Source of the DNA: Polymyxa betae A26-41
Lineage: Eukaryota; Protista; Endomyxa: Phytomyxea
DNA length: 64,000 bases
Assembly: GCA_003693705.1 (NCBI GenBank)
Contig: RBZT01000578.1
Location: 1 to 64,000 of the forward strand
Reading direction: 5' to 3'
Program-made: the position numbers and the translations under genes
The notes under the pieces: model-generated
Seen by the model: the letters and a program-made list of their open reading frames with translations, nothing else
Told to the model about the DNA's origin: nothing
Databases searched by the model: none
Part shown: one piece after another, positions 15,872 to 36,000 of the stretch
Numbering within the stretch: the first letter of the stretch is position 1
How the letters are laid out: every line of letters starts with the position of its first letter

Positions 15872-16873
15872 ATGCTGCTGCTGCTGTTCCACCAACTTCT
15901 GCGTCTGTTGCTATCCGTACGGACACCGTCATCTGGCTCTCATTTACAAATCCAACTCTATAACAACAGATCCGTCATATTTGCCACTTTGTATTCGACG
16001 GTTATCGTATTGGCCGGTATCGTCGTCACCAATACCGGCGATGTTTATGTGAGCGCCCCGGAGCAGCATCAGATCGCACGTTTCTCGTCTGCCAGTAACG
16101 AGTTCACGATGGTTGCCGGGAACGGGACACGCGGATACCGTGACGGGCCGGCCAGCACGGCCATGTTCAACTACCCGACCGGACTGGCCCTGGATCCCAG
16201 CTCAGGTCGCATCTACATCGCCGATCAGCTCAATCATTGCGTTCGCATCTACGACCCGCATACCGCCTCCGTATCGACTCTGATCCGTGACCTACCGTAC
16301 CCGCACGCGGTCCAGTACGTCAACCGGCAGCTGTTCGTCCTGCATGGTCCACTGAACGGAACCCGGATCGGACGTTTGGATGCAGATGGCTCCCTGAGCG
16401 TGATCTTGGGGAACTATTCAATTGGAGATGGTCCTCTACCTACCCGATCTGCAAATATATTCGGTGTGGGAGCTGCTGGTGCTATATTGTATGTGACACA
16501 ATATCAGCGCAATTCCATAGATCGCATTGATGTCAGGACCGGCGTCATTACCGACCTGAAATCGGTACTGAACCCCGCCAACGTCGATAAGATCATGTTC
16601 GGGCCGCTCGGTGTCGTCGTGGCTTCCGCGAACCACCACGATGCCGCCTTCCTATACGTTTATGAGTCGAATTTGGCTTATGAGATCGACCTGGATCTGG
16701 GTTCTCTACGGATTCTATCGGGATATCAGGATCGAGTTCAATATTGGCATCATCCAAGTCCGGATGTATCTATGAGGGCTGCTGTCTATACAAACACCGC
16801 TCTATACTTTATCGATCATGATGATCACGACGAGAGATCCCTCTACAAAATCCGTCGTATGTCTCTCTCCTAA
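15872..16873 (+). CDS. NHL-repeat beta-propeller protein with hydrophobic N-terminus (likely secreted), single ORF
   Basis: VAGNGTRGYRDGPASTAMFNYPTGLALDPSSGRIYIADQLNHCVRIYD is a canonical NHL repeat. Further propeller-like blades and several N-x-S/T sequons follow. Confidence 0.85.
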   Translation: MLLLLFHQLLRLLLSVRTPSSGSHLQIQLYNNRSVIFATLYSTVIVLAGIVVTNTGDVYVSAPEQHQIARFSSASNEFTMVAGNGTRGYRDGPASTAMFNYPTGLALDPSSGRIYIADQLNHCVRIYDPHTASVSTLIRDLPYPHAVQYVNRQLFVLHGPLNGTRIGRLDADGSLSVILGNYSIGDGPLPTRSANIFGVGAAGAILYVTQYQRNSIDRIDVRTGVITDLKSVLNPANVDKIMFGPLGVVVASANHHDAAFLYVYESNLAYEIDLDLGSLRILSGYQDRVQYWHHPSPDVSMRAAVYTNTALYFIDHDDHDERSLYKIRRMSLS

Positions 16874-16926
16874 TGCGATTAATCTGCTCGCATCAATTCA
16901 CTTACAACAAAGTTCCGGCACGGAAG

Positions 16927-17002
16927 CGTCGTGCTGGGCCAGGCCACCCCATATCCCTAACATCCCCCGTCGTACTGGGCCACCCCATATCCGTAACATT
17001 CC
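16927..17002. repeat. Imperfect tandem duplication (~35-40 bp x2) immediately upstream of the sphingomyelinase ATG
   Basis: cgtcgtgctgggccaggccaccccatatccctaacatccc followed by cgtcgtactgggccaccccatatccgtaacattcc. Confidence 0.85.
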
Positions 17003-17014
17003 AAGTGTGATTCA

Positions 17015-18013
17015 ATGCAAGTGTCAGTATTGGTTCTGATTCTATCGATTGTGGTCATTCTGGCCAGGGATGATGGTCATGTTGATATAATTTCATATAA
17101 TGTGCAATCATTCCCAGATTGGATACAGTCTATAGTCTATTTACCGAATCAAGGTCGGGTCGAATATATCCCCGAAAAGACCTTGGAAGCTGCCACAAAT
17201 CTGCTCAACCATCAACCAGATATGATTTGTTTTCAGGAGGCGTTCTCAGAGGATGTCCGGAACCAGATCAATACGTTTGCCAAACTGCACAATTATTATT
17301 CTCTTGGTCCTGTCCCGGCAAGTATACTACGATTTCAACCTTGTAATGGTGGCGTTATGCTTCTATCAAAGACCCAATTCACCTATCACACCATCCAAGG
17401 ATTTCCAACGACTACGACTTGCGGTCTGGATCGATTCGCTAATAAGGGTTTCATTTATGCTGAGACCATAATCAACAATGCTGCGATCGGTATCGTCGCC
17501 ACCCATTTGCAAGCCGTTGATAATCATTGTGCCTCCTATACGATGACTGCAGAGCAAGTCGCTCTTCTTAAACAGCAGCAGCAGCTGAAAAATATCGACA
17601 ACTTTCTCAAAAATGAGAAACGTGCTGTCGATGCTGTGTTCTTAGTCGGTGATCTCAACCTGAACTCATTTGATGGAAACGCTATCAATCTTGACGTAAT
17701 CCGTGCTGAACTTGATCTGGTTGGTGCTCGTCTACCAGCTTTGAGAGCTCCTCTTCATGGTCAACAACTCAGGGCATCATTCGACTTCACTACCAACACC
17801 TACGTCCAGAAACTGGCCAATCGCGAGCACCTGAACCCACCTCCACCCGAGCATGACGACTACGTACTGGCCCTGGGCGGGTACGGTTCGTCTTCGGTCA
17901 GTATGACGAATGTGATTGTGCCGGTGAAGAGGGAGGAATTCGGTGATCTGTCTGATCATCATGCTGTAGTTGGACAAGCGATAATCTCCTTCACATCACC
18001 TGTCAGCTCGTAG
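17015..18013 (+). CDS. Secreted EEP-superfamily phosphodiesterase, sphingomyelinase C-like; intronless
   Basis: Signal peptide MQVSVLVLILSIVVILA. Motifs ISYNV, PDMICFQEAF, NGGVMLLSK, DRFANKGF, ATHLQA, VGDLN, DYVL and LSDHHAV match the DNase-I-like SMase C catalytic set. Confidence 0.88.
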   Translation: MQVSVLVLILSIVVILARDDGHVDIISYNVQSFPDWIQSIVYLPNQGRVEYIPEKTLEAATNLLNHQPDMICFQEAFSEDVRNQINTFAKLHNYYSLGPVPASILRFQPCNGGVMLLSKTQFTYHTIQGFPTTTTCGLDRFANKGFIYAETIINNAAIGIVATHLQAVDNHCASYTMTAEQVALLKQQQQLKNIDNFLKNEKRAVDAVFLVGDLNLNSFDGNAINLDVIRAELDLVGARLPALRAPLHGQQLRASFDFTTNTYVQKLANREHLNPPPPEHDDYVLALGGYGSSSVSMTNVIVPVKREEFGDLSDHHAVVGQAIISFTSPVSS

Positions 18014-18213
18014 ACAAAAGCTACTTGTTATCGTATGGCTATGTTCGTTAATATCGACAAATCAATGTATATTATCTGGATAGATCGATAGATACCCGAT
18101 TACTATCCCGTTAGCAGTTATACACTTTGATCTGTAAACAGACACACACGATATAGATATGCCCAATATAGAGACGTAACATTGGCTGCAGGATGACGCC
18201 GAGGTTATTGTTG

Positions 18214-27165: not shown

Positions 27166-29026
27166 ATGAAATCTGACTGCTCTCAACCTTCTCCTAACCC
27201 CATTCGACGTCGCGAACACGAAGAATCAGAAGGGCGTTACAACACTTTCAGATGGATAGCTGGTGAACAAGGCGAGTCCCATGTTGGGACTGAGCCCAAG
27301 CGTGTTTCGCAATCTGCCATGGTGATTTACCAGCCTTACAAAGCAATCACGTTAACTGAAAGAGATATAGGGCGAGAGGTTGTATTGTGCTCAAGCTCAT
27401 CCATCAGAGCGCTTATCGCAGGAGCCAGTACGGATTCCCGAAGCTATCCGCGCCTATTTAAGTGGCTACTACTACCCATCGCAACGGGTCGGATATCAGA
27501 GCGAATTAGCTGTGTATGCTCCCGATGCGATCCAGCATTGCATGCCATATGGTCTTTCGAACCCAGCACGGGGACAATACCCTCATGCCCGTTTCGGTAG
27601 TGCTCATTCTGATGCTGTGAGCTGGCCGGTTGAATCCGGCGAAACATCATTGCAATATTGGGCAGAGGAATTGCCGTTTGGATTTGCAGTTTCCTCTCCT
27701 GCTCAAGGGCAAGGAGTCGGCTCCATTCAAATGCACGAATCTTGCGGTGAAGCCAACGCTCATTCTTCTCTGGCCCAGAGTTCTGTCACAAGTGAGTTAC
27801 GCTCCAGCGACGACGACCAAGGATCCGCACCGTGCGTATCTGAATGGCCACTTGACACGAAACTTTTCCACAGCAAAAATGACGCAGACCAATTAAATCA
27901 AATACTGCAGACGATTGAACGGAGCCAAGATGCTGACAGTAATTGCTGCTCGAACGAAACGCAACTGGGCGAAGAAGACCGACATGATTTGACAAACGAT
28001 ATCCGATCGCTTCTAGCAGATATGGCAATCACCGCCTCCATCAAAAACCTATTAATTGCAGTTGGCGGTATGCTTCAGCTCGAGTCGGGGCTCAGAATCC
28101 ATGTAACGCCCAGCTTTCTGATTCAACTAGCTGATCACAACCCTGACTTATTCGGCATGGATCAGAATTTGTTATATTTCGACACTTCCCTCAGTCCAGT
28201 TCTCCCCAATCACAACGACCAAGAAATCCCCGATAATTGCGGTACTGATTCGCTTACCATTGACAATGAGCCCCAAGGAAGGGCACTGCACCAAAATGAT
28301 TCCCCAACAGATACAGGCCAACACAGAAAATCGAGATCCCCTTCACCTACTTCGACCCAGAATAACGCATTCTTGCCTGAATTGGCAGATTCTATCCCAT
28401 GTCCGCAATCTAAATGTCCCCTTTCGGAGTCGGCTGAGCAGGGCTCCCCGCCATCGAAATCCCACAACCTCCCAGACGCAAGGCCGGGAGCTCCTGCAGG
28501 GGTTGTGATGACATCATCCACGGACTCAGAGCACACAATGGCATCGCCTATCATTGATGATGGTTCAGATTCCGACAACGAACCAATAATCAACAGCAAG
28601 GCGGAGCGGCGCTCGCGTAATCGCGAGCCAAACTTTTCTAACAGTCAATCATCGAACAGCAATGACATCCAACCCATCTCAATGAACAGCAATGGCAGCG
28701 ATCCCGTCCCACCGAATAGCAATGACAGCGAACATATTTGCTCGACTTGCGGTAAGCAATTCGGACGGCGGTTTGGCCTGCAAATGCATTATCGGACGCA
28801 CTCCGGCGAGAGACCTTACGAATGCCAGGTTTGTCAAAAACGCTTCGCTCATCGATCACATCTTACTCGCCATCGTCGAACCCACACCGGCGAGAGAAAC
28901 CATGTTTGCTATATCTGCGACAAGAGATTCACAGAAAATGGTAGCGTCATCCGACACATTCGACGACGACACCCAGATGTTGATCCAGATAGCGTTCGTC
29001 TGCGAACCAGACGACGAAAAAGTTAA
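27166..29026 (+). CDS. C2H2 zinc-finger transcription factor (3 C-terminal fingers)
   Basis: CSTC..HYRTH-SGERPY-CQVC..HRRTH-TGERNH-CYIC..HIRRRH. A 49-nt intron (27322-27370) joins ORF 27166 to ORF 27380 in frame. Confidence 0.92.
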
Positions 29027-29216
29027 ATAATAACAACTGGGATGTAACTTATTAATTTTTATATGGTGGTGAATTGAACAGTTAAACAGTCGGAAGTTAA
29101 TCGAGGCGATGGCTAGGAATCGCGCTCTTCTCGTTGACTTAATAGCAATTCATATGGCAACGGCCTGACGTGATTCGACAGAGCAATCTGGAGTCGCCGC
29201 GGTAGGTCATCCAGGT

Positions 29217-31492
29217 TCAACCCCAAATCGAAGCACAACGTTCGTAGTAGTGGCCAATTCTCGATAGTGTTCCAGTCGGGCGTGATGTCAACACGAGCTC
29301 TTCGGATCGGATCTTGGCAAGCAGCGACTTGAGTGCAAGATTAGGATAGACGTTAGTTAAGTCGAGTGGTAAGCCTATGCGATGACGAGAAAGTCAATGT
29401 TCGATCAGCAAGCGTCACTTGTGCCCAGGAGCGTACCAGTTAGGGGAGAGAAAGTTCGGCACGATTGACGTAAGATCTCCAATGACGCACGATCATAAGT
29501 GACGCCATCGGAAGCAACTACAGGATCCCGCATGATATCGCCGGAGATGGGGCAGAAGAACTCTTCGGGCAACGACGGGAACCAATGCGGCGTCGACATC
29601 CCCGTCTGCCAAAGCGTCGACGCTGAATCATCGCGCCAATTGCGCCCGGAATGCACTGGGACAGATGCAGGACGCGGAGGCACCGATTGGGATGTCGACG
29701 ACCAAATTCTGAACACATTGTTCATAAAGAGGATAGAGGACGCGGGAGCCCATTCTTACGTGTGTTGCGGTACCGGAGCGAACAGGCTCGCTGAGGCAGG
29801 AGGCACCGGCGATGGGGTGCGTGATGGCGAGCAATCTGGCGTCGTCCACAAGCCCATGGCACGTCCGTAGGTTGGCAATAGCATAACGTGAGGGTTATGT
29901 GGATGATCCGACGCCAAGGCGAAGATGTCTTCGTGACGCCGCAAGAGTTTCTTAAGGCCACCATACCGGGCTTTAAGCATGGCGGGCAATGCATGATTGT
30001 TGGTGGCGCTGTGCATCAGCGACCCCATCTTACCGACAGTCACGACACTCTCGTTCTCCTGCAGAATCGTGACCATCAGCTGGACCAGATCGCGCTCGTT
30101 GATATCGGGCATATCGAACTCGCCCGCCTGCAAAATCCGTTTCGTCATCTGGCTCAGGTCAGCGTCGAAAACCGATCCGGCGTCAGCCGGGACGGAGATC
30201 ATGGCGATTCGAGCAAGTACGCTCGGCATCAGCTTGGCAAAGAGCATATGCGGATCGCGATTCAAATCCCAGGCGGCGATGGTGCTCAGCGCACGTTTCG
30301 CAGTCTCCGTCAGCCGCTCTTTGACAAAGGCGGCGTTCATGCGAGACAGGCCCGCGCCAAGGTTCTGCACGGGATTACGAGGATCGATCACGTTGAATGC
30401 CCAATCGGTGAAGGTATCGTCCGAGGGATTGGCGGTGGCCGGATCGACGGCGTATCGCGATAGCAACGCCTTGCTGATGAGCGGCTTGGCGTTTGAGGGC
30501 CACGAACACGGCTCACCGACAACACTCTCGTAAAGCGGCAACGATGACAGATGAATAGGGCCGAATAAGCCAAACACATGCTGGTTCCAATCAAACTTCG
30601 CCAGGTACTGAAACAACAGCAGCAGGGTGTCAAACGGCGTCGTAATACGTCGATGGAAGGCGTTGAAAATGAAGAGGACCATGGTGCGGATCACATAAGA
30701 TGACAGGAGCCCATTGGTGGCATCCAGGACTTTGGCGTCGTACTGGGCCCAGGCCTTGGTCAGAATAATGGAACGCTTGAAGAGATGGCTCTGATCGAGG
30801 AGTCGATCGACCTCCTCGAATAGGGCACAGGACGCCAGAACATGGGAGGCATTGGCGCTGACGTCAACGGTAATGTCGCGAACCACAACCCGGATCATCT
30901 TGCCGCCATCAGGGGCCGCAACAAGCTCAGCGCTGCGGATGGGAAGAGGAACGTCGGAGTCGTCACGAGTCAGCAGTTTCAGGGCGCGCTGGCCCCAGGC
31001 CTTGTAGTTATTGTGGGTGAAAAACGCGCACAGGTTCACGTTGGAATCGGGCAGGTACGTCTTCAGGGCGAACGATCCGTGCGGGAAGACTTTCGCACCC
31101 AACGACTTCTTGATGACTGCCTCGACCTGGGCCAGTACCTCCGTGCGTTTGGCCTCTGCAGCAGAATTCGGTTGCAGAGCGCGGAGTATGTCGTTGAGCT
31201 GAGCGTTGACCTCGGTGTCCATTGAACATCGCTGATGCTGATCTGATAGAAACAGCTCAGTCTGTGGAAGTTTTGGGGACGGGGCTCGTGATCGAAACGG
31301 AAGCGGCGGCGACGCTTTCAATTCGCCCAATGTAGAAAGACCCTGACAGGAGACACTGCGACCGAACTTGAAGATGGGCGACGATAGGCCCGGGTCGTCC
31401 TGGGCGGCAGGGCGGCCACCAGCATTGCCGCTTCCCAGCGGACGGAATTCCGGTGCCGACAGCTGCAAATCGGAGAACAACGACGCCGACAT
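29217..31492 (-). CDS. PAM2 motif + non-canonical poly(A)-polymerase-like nucleotidyltransferase fold (catalytic DxD replaced by NxN) + PAP/OAS-type substrate domain + LOTUS/OST-HTH + U-box; 3 exons
   Basis: SDLQLSAPEFRP (PAM2). FPHGSFALKTYLPDSNVNL vs family consensus FGSVPLKTYLPDGDIDL. HLFKRSIILTKAW..GLLSSY; NVIDPRNPVQNLG. VTVGKMGSLM..LKARYGGLKKLL (OST-HTH-like). PEEFFCPISGDIMRDPVVASDGVTYDR..SPLTG|LPLDLTNVYPNLALKSLL (U-box). Intron 29759-29709 links the two ORFs in frame. Confidence 0.85.
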
Positions 31493-31648
31493 GGGCGAAC
31501 GGCGCCCCAAACAAATGACACGAAGCCGAACCAAATGCCTAAGCGACAGAGAGCGAGGAGATGAGTTCGGGGAAACCTCGAGCGGTCCGTCACGGATTTC
31601 ATTACATGACTGGATGGAAGAGAACCCGCACTTGACTGAGACCTATTA

Positions 31649-32589
31649 TTAGACCCAATGCAGTCGATATCTATTCTATTACTCTCAATTATCACTTGAT
31701 ATCCGTTCATACACACACCTTACCTCGAGCAAGGGGTAGTACACACACTAACCATACATCCGCCAGTGCTCGTCCATAGCATCAGCCTGCCCGCGTCTTG
31801 CCTTACAATCCGCTGAAATTCTCGGCCTTTGACAAGTACCAGATACGTTCCGATCTCAACTGCGTTCAGTATGGCAAGGTTTGAAAGCACAGCGACAATC
31901 GACAGGGTGTGATAGTAAGCAAGAGCGAGATCAAATTTGTTTTGAAACGTATGTGAAGAGAGTATAAAGAGAACGTAGATCCGCGATGCAAGCAATTCGT
32001 CAATACATTAGTCTAGACATCATGGCGTCTGACAATATAAATTCAAGAGCTACTCCTATATGATAGCAATGCACTTGTACCAGCGACTTCTGGTGATGGT
32101 AGTGGGCTTGGTAAGTCTGATCTTAATCGAGATTGGTAAAACCGCTACGCTCACCATCAAAGACCACTTGCCGGGCATGGATCGTCTTTCGGAATCGTTC
32201 CGAAATTATATGATTCTTGGCTTCGATAGCAACATTTGGAATAGGCATGTAATGGATTCTAACCTATTAATTGAGCACAGATATGAGCTTTACAGAAGGC
32301 AGATACTTACCCGAAAAAGCTGCCAAGCATCCATCGGCATAACGAGACACCCATCATTACACCAATCTGTCGGGCGACGACTAGCCATAGATTCGTCAGC
32401 CAAAAACCAAACCAGTAAGCGAAGCGGCTTACAAGGCGTCGTTACACGAAGCGTCTGCTTCAACTCCTCAAGCTGCTCTTCGTACATCTGCTGCTCGAAC
32501 GCCTCCCACTCCTCATCGGTCATGTCATCCCACTTAGCTCGATCCCGGACGGCACCGGTCTGCCCCGGGGCCGATGTCGTCGTCGACAT
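31649..32589 (-). CDS. Multi-exon hypothetical protein lying between the two LOTUS genes
   Basis: ATG 32589 gives MSTTTSAPGQ...acidic helix...WQLFR| with a GTAAGT donor. Further exon-like segments include ORF 31720-31995, ending in a GTAAGG donor. No family recognised. Confidence 0.45.
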
Positions 32590-33023
32590 TAAACTCCGAT
32601 AACAACTATGAACGGCACAGCGATGATACTGATAAATCACTGCAAGTTTTATACCCAGTAATTACATCTTATCGGGAGTGAAGAGATACTTTCTCTAATA
32701 ACGACTCAACATTTCAAAAGAAATTACAAAGCGATTTTGATGACTTCATGTTGAACCAGACTCCGAACAAAACATTTTTTTTCTTTCTAGTGTAACATTA
32801 CATAGGAGGATCTCAGCACAGGCCATAACAAGTCAGAGATATCAGAGCAGAGAACTCTTAAAATAGAAATCCAGAAAACCCTAACCGGAAGTGGTGCAGG
32901 CCGCGCAACGTATTCGTCTGACATGAGCACGGTCGCGCAACTTTTCCGGGTCATCTCGTAGAGGTGTTTGTTAATGGGGGGCTCCCATAACATTATCGTC
33001 GTGTGTCGGCACACATCATCACC

Positions 33024-36000
33024 ATGCTCTGCATTTCGGAAGATGACTACAGTGATTCCGAGCATGTGCACACGGGAAAGTTCGCAGCGCCCCGTCCTCA
33101 TATCCAGGCTGACCTTTATCGCCTGGGTCGCGAGATTCAGCGCTTTCTGATGGAGGAACCCGGATATTCGCTGAATCTTTGCAAACTTCGGGAGAAATAC
33201 GAATCATTCTATGGAAAGCCTCTTGGTATGTTTTCAGTTAGCAATTGGTTCAAATGGCCGTAGCTAACCGAGTCGTAGATAAACTCGGCTATTCGAAACT
33301 GGTTGATTGTGTGTATGCCTTGCCTGATCCAATTACTACCCGAGTAAGAATTTCCATCCATTGTTCTGTCTTCGTGCTTATCTTCTAACAAAGAACGTTC
33401 GTCCGAATGGCGTCGCGTTACTGTTAATGCGTCCGATGCGCGATTCATGTAAAGCTTTTCAGCGAGATCAATGCCCAAGAGAGCCCGATGAGTGTGATTG
33501 CGAGCATGAGTGTGACCTTTGTGGTTACCCAACACATGGAGCATCTCAATGTGTTGATGAAGGTGCGCCTGATACCAAACCAGTCCAATCCTACACACAT
33601 TGCTGTCTGCGTTCCAAGTGTGTCGGTGACATTCACAATCCAGACATTTATGTTCCAGATGCTGACGATCTTATCCTCGCTGACCTTTCTGTCAACTCGA
33701 ACAGAATCTCAGTTGAGGAGATGCTTAAAGTGCAAGACAGATATCAAACACCGCCAACCTTTACCAATCCTGATCTGGAATGCGTCAACGGTCGCCCGAA
33801 CTTGAGACCAACGCCCCGTGGGCCAGCGCCTCGTAGACCGCGTGTCAATCCGCCCTTGGATGAAAAGCAGCTGAAAATTCGCGCTTTCTATGCTCACTTT
33901 ATCGCCTGGGTGAAGAATCGATATCGCGAATTCCAAGACTGGCCAAGAGACCGCGAAGACTTTTCTTTTGAATGGGAGTCGTACCTGTCTGGAAACCGTG
34001 AGATGCGTCAGACAGTTGTCGCTTTGATTGATTTCTCTCCATCCGCTGCTCTCGTGTACTTATCGGCTGAGATTCACGTTGTCGCCATTGTGAATTTGAC
34101 CGAGCTTGTCTGGAACGCAAGCGCCATTGCAGAATTGCTGGAAATCACTGGTGCCGCCCCACCTCCCTCACGTCGATGGAGTCAGTCGTCGAGCCATTGG
34201 GGTGGTGAAGAACCTCCTGCTGCCAGAGCCCGTAATCCGGCGCCTCGTCCATGGTCGGATCAAGTCGCTGCGCCAGCTGCTTCGGAGCTGCTACCTGGTC
34301 AACAAGCGCCTGTCGCCGAGCAGAAAGTTGTGTTCACGGTTTCAAAAAGCAACAATATCCAGGACCCTCCGGCGTCATCCAAAGTTTGGCGTCCTGACTC
34401 GCCTGAACGATACACGTCTAAGATCCCGATTCCGGCTTCCAATCGCTTCATGGACGATGACGAAGATGATGAGGACAATCAACAGTCCCGCGCTTGGTCT
34501 ACCAGCTGGCGACCAAAAGCTAGCGATTACGGTAACGACAACCAGTGGGATAACAATACTAACGGTCATTACTCAAACGGGACCGGGTATGCCGCTAACG
34601 GCAATCCCGTTACCATTAACGAGGACGAGGATGAAGAAGGCGCTATCAACGAGAATGAAGAGGAGGTTGATTTCAATGAAGAGGATGAACTTATTGCTGA
34701 AGATGACGATGCTATTGTGGATTCGTCTTACGAAATTCAGCACGAATACTACGAAGAAGTTGTCCAGTCAACTCATCAACCGATTCTACACGATGCCACC
34801 AGCCACATGGACAGTATTGCCAATGCCTATGCTTCCGATTCAGCATCTGATGACGAGCTTCCTACCGACAATCAGTTCAAACCACAAACGACTGTACCAA
34901 TGCCTGTTCCGAGTTCTCCGGTCAAGGAGCCGGTTCAAGAGCCACCTCTTTGGAATGAGGCGCGAATTCAGGCCAACGGCGTGAAATCGTCATTCTCGGC
35001 TCTTTTTGGAGATTCTGCTCCGAGTCAACAGCTTCTACCTGAACAGCCGTTCGTCGCCCAACTCGAATTCGGTAAGTTATTTTCGTTTGCTGTTCAAAGC
35101 TGTATTTGTATCTAATTACTCTGCAGAAGAGCCTGATCTGCGTCATGTTGAGGACACACCAACAATTCCCTCTTCTAATATCCAACAGTCCAGCTCCGAC
35201 CAGTGGGGATCGGTTGCTGATGCGCAACCGAATGACGTCACGAAGCCACAGTCAGACATGAAATCAAGTCCGGATTCGACTCCGGTGCTTTCCGCTGCCG
35301 CTACGGAATTCGTCATTTCCAATGCAGAACCCGCCTCTTCAGAATCTAAGCCGAAATTATCGTCATCGGCTCCAGAGTTCATTCTGTCTTCTACTTCGAA
35401 GCCCAGACTATCCCCGTTTGCTTCAGAATTTGTCACGCCAGAATCAGCTGCTGTTGATGAAGAGCCGATCGTCGAATCTGATTCAGGAGCCGAAGATGAT
35501 GGCGATAATCAGCCTCCGTCAATCACTATTGACAACAAGATCGTAGTTGGAGAAGGAATTGGACAAAACTATCGACGTATGAACGATATTGTCTCTCGTG
35601 CTTCTGACTTCGCTTTCCGAGCTGACGTTTCTTCATCTGAAGTGGTTGCTGACTTGAAACGTCTCGGGTTAGCCTCAGGAACTGCACCCAACATGAACTG
35701 GAATACAGACCGTGTCAAAGAAATCGAGTCATCTTTGGACGCCCGCACACCTTGTTTTGAGCAGTCGTCTTCTCAGCAAGTCGTCTCGGATCAGAATGAG
35801 GAATTCCTGAAGAGCCTGTTGTACCAGGCGATTCTTGGAACCAAACCAGCATCCAATGAAGAAATCGATCTTTTCATTCATGAGTGCCTACGTCTGCAAC
35901 ATGCAGGCGTTGATGCAGTTCTTGGTGGTATGAGAAGTCTCTGGGTCGTTTCTCGAACTTCTTCTGCTTCTGGGTCTGGGCTTTTCCAGGCACCATCCAT

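Follow-up and report, generated by a model that had tools for sequence, protein, structure and literature searches.

The Pol-beta nucleotidyltransferase (NTase) signature requires a D.[DE] pair of acidic residues. NTase-fold pseudoenzymes are known, and the N-terminal Lin28-interacting module of TUT4/TUT7 has the fold of the terminal nucleotidyltransferases (TENTs) without catalysis and recognises an RNA-protein complex. RNA-guided E3 ubiquitin ligases are likewise known, and the RNA-binding E3s that are recruited to messenger ribonucleoproteins (mRNPs) include MKRN1, which combines PAM2 with RING, CNOT4, Roquin and MEX-3. Here we describe a gene that joins a TENT-type domain with a lost catalytic pair, a LOTUS-like winged helix and a U-box in a single protein of 720 amino acids (aa). 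The gene lies on the minus strand (31492..29217) of a 64,000-nucleotide (nt) stretch, hereafter the window, to which all positions refer, of contig RBZT01000578.1 of Polymyxa betae A26-41, a plasmodiophorid root parasite and vector of plant viruses (PMC6328671). A literature search for this architecture, for loss of the catalytic site or for U-box proteins of Plasmodiophora brassicae returned nothing relevant, and the combination of an NTase-fold pseudoenzyme with an RNA-associated E3 is undescribed in the literature searched.

Compared with the TENTs (Cid1, GLD-2/TENT2, URT1, Trf4, TUT4/7 and CutA), the protein has the same fold, the hGS motif, the aligned Lys-Lys and Ser-Tyr segments and the DP...NLG loop, but it carries Asn in place of the Asp pair and, in addition, a winged helix and a U-box, both of which are missing from those enzymes. 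The closest named relatives of its NTase domain are plant proteins of the PAP/OAS1 substrate-binding family (E 5e-51 and weaker, 30-35% identity), which share the LKTYLPD..D.D and HLFKR blocks but retain DxD and lack both the winged helix and the U-box. These plant relatives presumably correspond to the Arabidopsis NTP2/6/7/8 clade, judging by their TAIR names. NTP6/7 have been reported to cytidylate pre-miRNAs, and NTP8 to be localised to P-bodies (PMC13030794). The N-terminal module of TUT4 reads S-D-V-N-I, that is, DxN as in the U-box fusions described below, in a weak sub-alignment (-3 bits) that is not significant alone; TUT4/7 pair this dead module with a live one, whereas the output in the P. 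betae protein is a U-box. OASL also ties a pseudo-NTase to the ubiquitin system, but it belongs to another NTase subfamily and carries Ubl domains instead of an E3; one member of the family described here, P0046, resembles OASL by its ubiquitin domain, but its NTase keeps DxD. The E3s of mRNPs follow the same proposed logic, an RNA-binding or poly(A)-binding protein (PABP)-binding part coupled to a domain that recruits the ubiquitin-conjugating enzyme (E2), but they use RING with zinc-finger, KH, RRM or ROQ readers, and none of them has a dead tailing enzyme. Finally, Egalitarian (Egl) employs LOTUS-like winged helices together with an exonuclease-homology domain for RNA recognition, and its domains closely resemble LOTUS and help to recognise and bind RNA localisation signals (PMC13186709); it has no NTase and no U-box, and the matches of our family to the corresponding Pfam model are below the cut-off.

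The gene consists of three coding exons with a coding sequence (CDS) of 1733+272+158 = 2163 nt, ending in the stop codon TGA at 29219-29217 (Table 1). The frame, read by hand, is kept at both joints: exon 1 ends in phase 2 (..CAC AC/A ATT..) and exon 2 in phase 1 (..ACT G/GC TTA..). Contigs of two public studies (X2, 2017; X4, 2022) have 0 mismatches to 29000-31800 and skip exactly the two coding-region introns, which are CT..AC on the plus strand, that is, GT..AG on the gene strand, so that the NTase exon is joined to both U-box exons. Because the GT..AG introns are missing from them, these contigs are taken as RNA-derived; no library type is recorded for X2 and X4, and the splicing evidence consists of the assembled contigs. 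A third GT..AG intron, in the 5' leader, is spliced in the X4 contig only, the X2 contig ending at 31677 and thus not reaching across it. The raw RNA runs X17 and X18 contained no reads on the stretch and hence were counted as no test of splicing. This is, then, a transcribed and spliced gene that joins a tailing-enzyme fold, a LOTUS-like winged helix and an intact U-box, and it is not a chance reading frame, given that its homologs reach E 7e-204. An earlier note on this DNA had predicted a long open frame in which introns fuse the NTase exon in frame to a complete U-box; the 720 codons open across two introns, and the contigs that skip both GT-AG introns exactly, bear this out.

The protein contains the segment H-G-S-F-A-L-K-T-Y-L-P-D-S-N-V-N-L, in which the hG[GS] motif is present (H138-G139-S140, with G and S invariant across the family alignment) and the metal-binding D.[DE] pair is missing. 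The codons of N151 (31042-31040) and N153 (31036-31034) are both AAC and, because the family profile aligns these residues to the sD.D of URT1 and Cid1, the two Asn occupy the exact place of the metal-binding pair. The third carboxylate is kept as D210 in VDVSAN, on the neighbouring strand, and in the profile alignment the family's "vvDis" falls on the third-Asp strand of Cid1. The segments that contact the nucleotide are retained as well: HLFKR..K.W pairs with LKPMVLLVKHWA of Cid1, and GLLSSY with GTLSSY(G) of the same enzyme. Loss of an Arg in the NNLGRSV loop was considered as a second sign of inactivity and dropped, since the active TUT4 has NLGAGVS there. From these alignments, nucleotidyl transfer by the NTase domain is predicted to be absent.

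An AlphaFold2 model of residues 90-578, built from 26 aligned relatives, reached a predicted local distance difference test (pLDDT) score of 87 and a predicted template modelling (TM) score of 0.82. A Foldseek search of the PDB with this model returned GLD-2, Cid1, URT1, CutA, TUT1 and TUT7 (E 1.5e-10 to 7e-9; TM by target 0.6-0.69), and the two-lobed Cid1-like fold, with a catalytic palm and a central PAP-associated domain, is present. The PDB matches listed are all TENT-type (Cid1/GLD-2/URT1/TUT/CutA), with no OAS or cGAS chain among them. All protein searches were run on single exons rather than on the joined 720-aa protein. A profile of the family's NTase region matched URT1 in the PDB at 3e-8 and also TUT4, Cid1, MEAT1 and Trf4; the family profile was required for this, a PDB search with the single sequence of exon 1 having given a chance match only. 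Similarly, all 32 relatives found by the word search (E 7e-204 to 2e-15) carry a precomputed PAP-OAS1 domain (PF26180), which our own Pfam scan did not report, giving only weak PF22600 and PF01909. As modelled, the fold is that of a Cid1/GLD-2/URT1-type TENT and is not closest to OAS/cGAS. The earlier note was thus right about the GSxxLKTYLPDGDIDL-type motif with both Asp codons turned into AAC and about the intact remainder of the fold, but its comparison with OAS/cGAS does not hold, the nearest folds being those of tailing enzymes.

The loss of the catalytic pair can be placed in the history of the family. A first word search gave 32 relatives, and a second one, with a clade profile, added more kin but returned fewer fusion members than the first; the counts of relatives and of fusion members are lower bounds. 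At least eight cluster representatives (P0001-P0008; at least 11 sequences when cluster members are included) carry NTase, winged helix and U-box in this order. P0002 comes from P. brassicae and P0005 from the vampyrellid Leptophrys vorax (EP00475_P009862), the others from metagenomes or Logan assemblies. The best named match is P0002 (51% identity; Leptophrys ~40%), an automatically named 'U-box domain-containing protein' with precomputed Pfam PAP-OAS1 and U-box matches. It and the Leptophrys protein are true orthologs of the P. betae gene, with the same domain order and with Asn at the second Asp position, and the phytomyxid orthologs have the C-terminal tail and the PAM2-like N-terminus in common with it as well.

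In all the U-box fusions found, the second Asp of the pair is Asn, the motif being DxN or, in the P0004 cluster, GxN, and the third carboxylate is Glu, whereas the P. betae gene has NxN and a third-site Asp. By contrast, the relatives that lack a U-box and whose motif was located (at least 38) have DxD, and their third site is Asp where the block was found (32 of the 38); all of them but P0046 are listed as having this Asp invariant in the family alignments. They comprise protist proteins with the winged helix (P0009, P0011, P0044-46), protist proteins without it and 27 plant proteins. A divergent Synura-type cluster (P0032, P0039 and P0040) reads LPEDTVRL, with the pair lost and the third site not found. 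In a maximum-likelihood tree of the NTase domain, all fusions and a U-box-less paralog from the P. betae genome form one clade (support 93/96), within which phytomyxids (99/99) and vampyrellid-type sequences (98/96) form separate subclades. Asn occurs in every fusion and all of them belong to one clade, which makes the second-site loss old and places it at the base of this clade. On the sequences compared, only this second-site loss is ancestral, and NxN is specific to the P. betae genome, where it also occurs in the paralog.

The fusion proteins do not look like decaying copies. Their terminal branches (0.25-0.73) are not longer than those of the DxD-bearing kin, and identity to the orthologs amounts to 40-59% in the NTase, 65-82% in the winged helix and 46-87% in the U-box, against 10-37% in the linkers. 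By this measure all three domains are under purifying selection, and the NTase would be a maintained non-catalytic domain. The earlier note had spoken of a selected pseudoenzyme and had asked whether orthologs conserve NxN; the ortholog alignment agrees with the former, since no fusion ortholog keeps DxD while the NTase stays conserved and the linkers drift, and answers the latter only in part, in that the orthologs have DxN or GxN and the second-site loss is kept throughout. The third Asp, which the note had called intact, is so in this gene and is replaced by Glu in the orthologs.

The paralog (G000:C344 ~16059-18171; L003:1228-3340, +) is fast-evolving and has three apparent exons; in the tree its long branch (2.24) lies within the fusion clade. 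It reads GSYALRTFLPDSNVNL, again NxN, with Glu at the third site and HLLKR; its SSY segment is lost and its winged-helix block is intact. No U-box was found on its contig.

The NTase module also occurs in other, independent fusions, namely with MLLE in P0057 (8e-9), with ubiquitin immediately after the winged helix in P0046 and with an RNase_T exonuclease in P0047, and these partners count in favour of the RNA-directed E3 proposed below. Further partners are PX (P0045), Ig domains (P0054) and MLLE plus Ig (P0057). Among P0044-P0047, P0054 and P0057, DxD is intact wherever the motif was found (it was not found in P0047). The module thus seems to be a promiscuous fusion partner in protists.

No block of the protein is better conserved than the winged helix (residues ~469-548). 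A separate model of it reached a pLDDT of 84, and its best Foldseek match was the LOTUS domain of TDRD5 (E 0.046, TM 0.63/0.73); the first TDRD7 LOTUS domain came next. In an exhaustive structural alignment, the Tejas LOTUS domain gave Z 8.9 with a root-mean-square deviation of 2.6 over 74/75 residues, followed by TDRD5 (8.6), TDRD7 (7.9), Egalitarian (9rvy; 7.9), Marf1 (7.5) and Oskar (7.0). A profile search of the PDB with the winged-helix region found no LOTUS chain. The sole Pfam model approached was WH_Egal (PF23713), with 8 of 13 kin at E 0.0015-0.05 and ~16 bits, below the cut-off of 27; the winged helix encoded in the window itself gave no match to it. We therefore use LOTUS/Egl-like as a name for the modelled fold and not as a proven membership.

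Exon 2 matches the U-box model PF04564 with an E of 7.8e-12 and 45.6 bits (cut-off 21.4; profile positions 2-49) and, in the PDB, the U-boxes of LubX, plant PUB and CHIP at 1.8e-8 to 1e-2. In exon 3, the U-box part shares 83-87% identity with P0001 and P0002; it is also covered by the Pfam envelope of the orthologs, which reaches profile position 62. The translation of exon 2 contains CPISGDIM and SPLT, so that the Ile of CPI and the Pro of SPLT are kept; from known CHIP and PUB U-boxes, we take the loops with the CPI Ile and the xPxT Pro to be E2 contacts. Judged by these matches, the U-box is intact and is split by an intron, and the earlier note's description of it as complete stands. Two segments outside known domains are shared with P0001 and P0002, the PPRPASVPV motif in the linker before the U-box (29650-29680, -) and the C-terminal tail ending in ASIWG (29220-29303, -), the latter being 61-79% identical.

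Near the N-terminus, LQLSAPEFRP has its L, A, F and P in the register of PAM2 (Leu3, Ala7, Phe10 and Pro12 of the ELM-type pattern), and three phytomyxid orthologs (this gene, P0001 and P0002) carry the motif at an equivalent N-terminal position. The loose pattern arises in 3.5% of shuffles of exon 1. An MLLE domain is encoded in the same genome, at G000:C460. By eye, no clearly hydrophobic signal peptide is seen at the N-terminus; this observation and the conservation in a free-living predator both speak against a host-targeted effector.

Taken together, the domains suggest a 720-aa cytoplasmic U-box E3 whose substrates would be recognised by the dead TENT module and the LOTUS/Egalitarian-like winged helix. 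Aided by the winged helix, the NTase cleft may bind an RNA 3' end, a nucleotide or a ribonucleoprotein (RNP) partner without adding nucleotides, and in phytomyxids the PAM2-like motif may bring the protein to PABP. The U-box would then recruit E2~ubiquitin, and ubiquitin would go either to protein components of the bound mRNP or to the E3 protein. We lean, with some reserve, towards this general reading of an RNA- or RNP-directed E3 that acts in mRNA turnover or surveillance. Its more specific form, in which the dead pocket reads RNA 3' ends (for instance, the end of a poly(A) tail reached via PAM2 and PABP) and serves as the substrate receptor of the U-box ligase, is put forward tentatively, as a possibility for which the odds are not in favour. 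Conservation in a free-living vampyrellid points to a role in endogenous RNA metabolism.

Several points weigh against the proposal of an RNA-directed E3. Binding of RNA, nucleotide and PABP, as well as E3 activity, is inferred from sequence and models. In the active site, an invariant Asp two residues upstream of the altered pair (D149 of LPD) remains alongside D210, which might allow some metal binding. The Z scores to LOTUS domains are level with those to the generic DNA-binding winged helices of RosR (9.0) and FOXN1 (8.3), and OST-HTH (PF12872) was not matched, even at E up to 10, in the domain from the window and 12 kin. Of the LOTUS domain proposed in the earlier note, what survives is a winged-helix fold that matches LOTUS, with ties to generic winged helices and no OST-HTH match. 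LOTUS domains can, moreover, bind DEAD-box helicases instead of RNA. The PAM2-like motif departs from the strict ELM pattern at one position, having Q/H in place of the expected N/S, and the vampyrellid-type orthologs lack it. As for the wider set of fusions, P0046, P0047 and P0057 are gene predictions, from metagenome contigs or EukProt, and could be mis-fused.

The strongest competitor is an E3 directed at proteins, in which the dead NTase would serve only as a scaffold or for dimerisation and the U-box would ubiquitinate a DEAD-box helicase bound by the LOTUS-like domain, or the partners of that helicase, without any direct reading of RNA or nucleotides. NTase-fold pseudoenzymes that act as scaffolds are known, and extended LOTUS domains bind Vasa. 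The high conservation of the winged helix (65-82%) fits such a role, as do its resemblance to the LOTUS domains of Tejas, TDRD5 and Oskar, among whose known partners are Vasa-type helicases, and a short helix that follows the last strand in the model. However, the triphosphate- and base-contact segments (HLFKR..K.W and LLSSY) are kept in the fusion clade, which would be needless in a pure scaffold, and kin with the same winged helix (P0009, P0011 and P0044-46) keep DxD; because of this, the winged helix appears to have originally served an active RNA enzyme. On balance, we consider a purely protein-directed ligase rather unlikely. Improbable, too, is an NTase that still works, perhaps slowly or in a specialised way, by means of D149 and D210, which would make the protein a bifunctional tailing enzyme and E3. 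The invariance of D149 in the family, the retention of D210 and the conserved remainder of the active-site architecture speak for residual tailing, but both positions aligned to the metal-binding pair of URT1 and Cid1 are Asn, the Pol-beta signature is established to require D.[DE], the position equivalent to D149 is Gly in Trf4-type enzymes, and the fixation of Asn at the second site in every U-box fusion found is the pattern of a released catalytic constraint.

The earlier note had also raised an antiviral role, namely a sensor resembling OAS/cGAS whose output is ubiquitin. The pairing of a pseudo-NTase with the ubiquitin system is loosely reminiscent of OASL, and the probable host organism, P. 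betae, transmits plant viruses (PMC6328671); yet the Foldseek matches listed are all TENT-type, with no OAS or cGAS, the architecture is kept in a free-living vampyrellid, and arms-race divergence is not seen, branch lengths being ordinary and the domains highly conserved. No evidence in support of an antiviral role was found, the vampyrellid conservation pointing elsewhere, and we regard it as very improbable. That the gene is decaying, or that its motif results from an assembly or sequencing artefact, is hardly credible. Two G-to-A changes would suffice to turn GAC into AAC at both positions, but 720 codons are open across two introns, the contigs from both independent studies match without a single difference, and the orthologs share the second-site Asn in domains under apparent purifying selection; the identical contigs and the Asn of the orthologs likewise contradict the strain-specific decay or sequencing error that the note had named as a refuting case.

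Table 1. Features of the U-box gene in the window.
Feature	Position	Strand	Content or basis
CDS exon 1	29760..31492	-	residues 1-577 + 2 nt: disordered N-terminus, predicted pseudo-NTase, winged helix, Pro/Ser linker; end set by the 29708/29760 joint
PAM2-like motif LQLSAPEFRP, residues 9-18	31439..31468	-	pattern match, position shared with P0001 and P0002
Terminal-nucleotidyltransferase catalytic and central domains, residues ~96-440	30173..31207	-	AlphaFold2 model, Foldseek, family profile
hGS...DxD motif region, G139-S140...N151-V-N153	31031..31078	-	sequence and profile alignment to URT1 and Cid1
Third carboxylate D210 (VDVSAN)	30863..30865	-	alignments
LOTUS/Egalitarian-domain-like winged helix, residues ~469-548	29849..30088	-	structure model, Foldseek, structural alignment
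Intron 1, 51 nt, GT..AG	29709..29759	-	skipped in X2 and X4 contigs
CDS exon 2: PPRPASVPV linker motif and first two thirds of U-box (from ~29575)	29437..29708	-	translation, PF04564
Intron 2, 62 nt, GT..AG, within the U-box	29375..29436	-	skipped in X2 and X4 contigs
CDS exon 3: last third of U-box (to ~29304), C-terminal tail ending in ASIWG, stop	29217..29374	-	translation, ortholog identity
5' untranslated region intron, 48 nt	31676..31723	-	skipped in X4 contig only

The U-box gene is flanked by a convergent C2H2 zinc-finger gene (27380-29026, +) with three fingers (zf-C2H2, 4.5e-13), which ends ~190 nt away from the TGA of the U-box gene; because one X2 contig spans both, their 3' ends may overlap. 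On the other side lies a divergently transcribed neighbour (33003-35440, +), in which the open reading frame 33003-33263 is LOTUS-like by eye and a PAM2-like match is found at 35288-35317; a Pfam scan of its two open reading frames gave no match. This LOTUS/PAM2-like gene was considered as a conserved partner of the U-box gene and rejected, the P. brassicae ortholog having different neighbours.

The history outlined here is that of a tailing-enzyme fold that would have lost catalysis on the branch that defines the U-box fusion clade and was then conserved across Phytomyxea and vampyrellids. It amounts to a natural experiment in the conversion of an RNA-modifying enzyme into a putative reader of RNA or RNPs, with active winged-helix relatives still extant, DxN in the fusion clade and NxN in this genome. 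Very little is known of RNA biology in plasmodiophorids, which parasitise plants obligately and transmit viruses, and recombinant protein would make the reader idea directly testable. If this idea is true, the protein would be the first pseudo-terminal-nucleotidyltransferase that turns the status of an RNA 3' end into ubiquitination, and would represent an mRNA surveillance mechanism specific to endomyxans.

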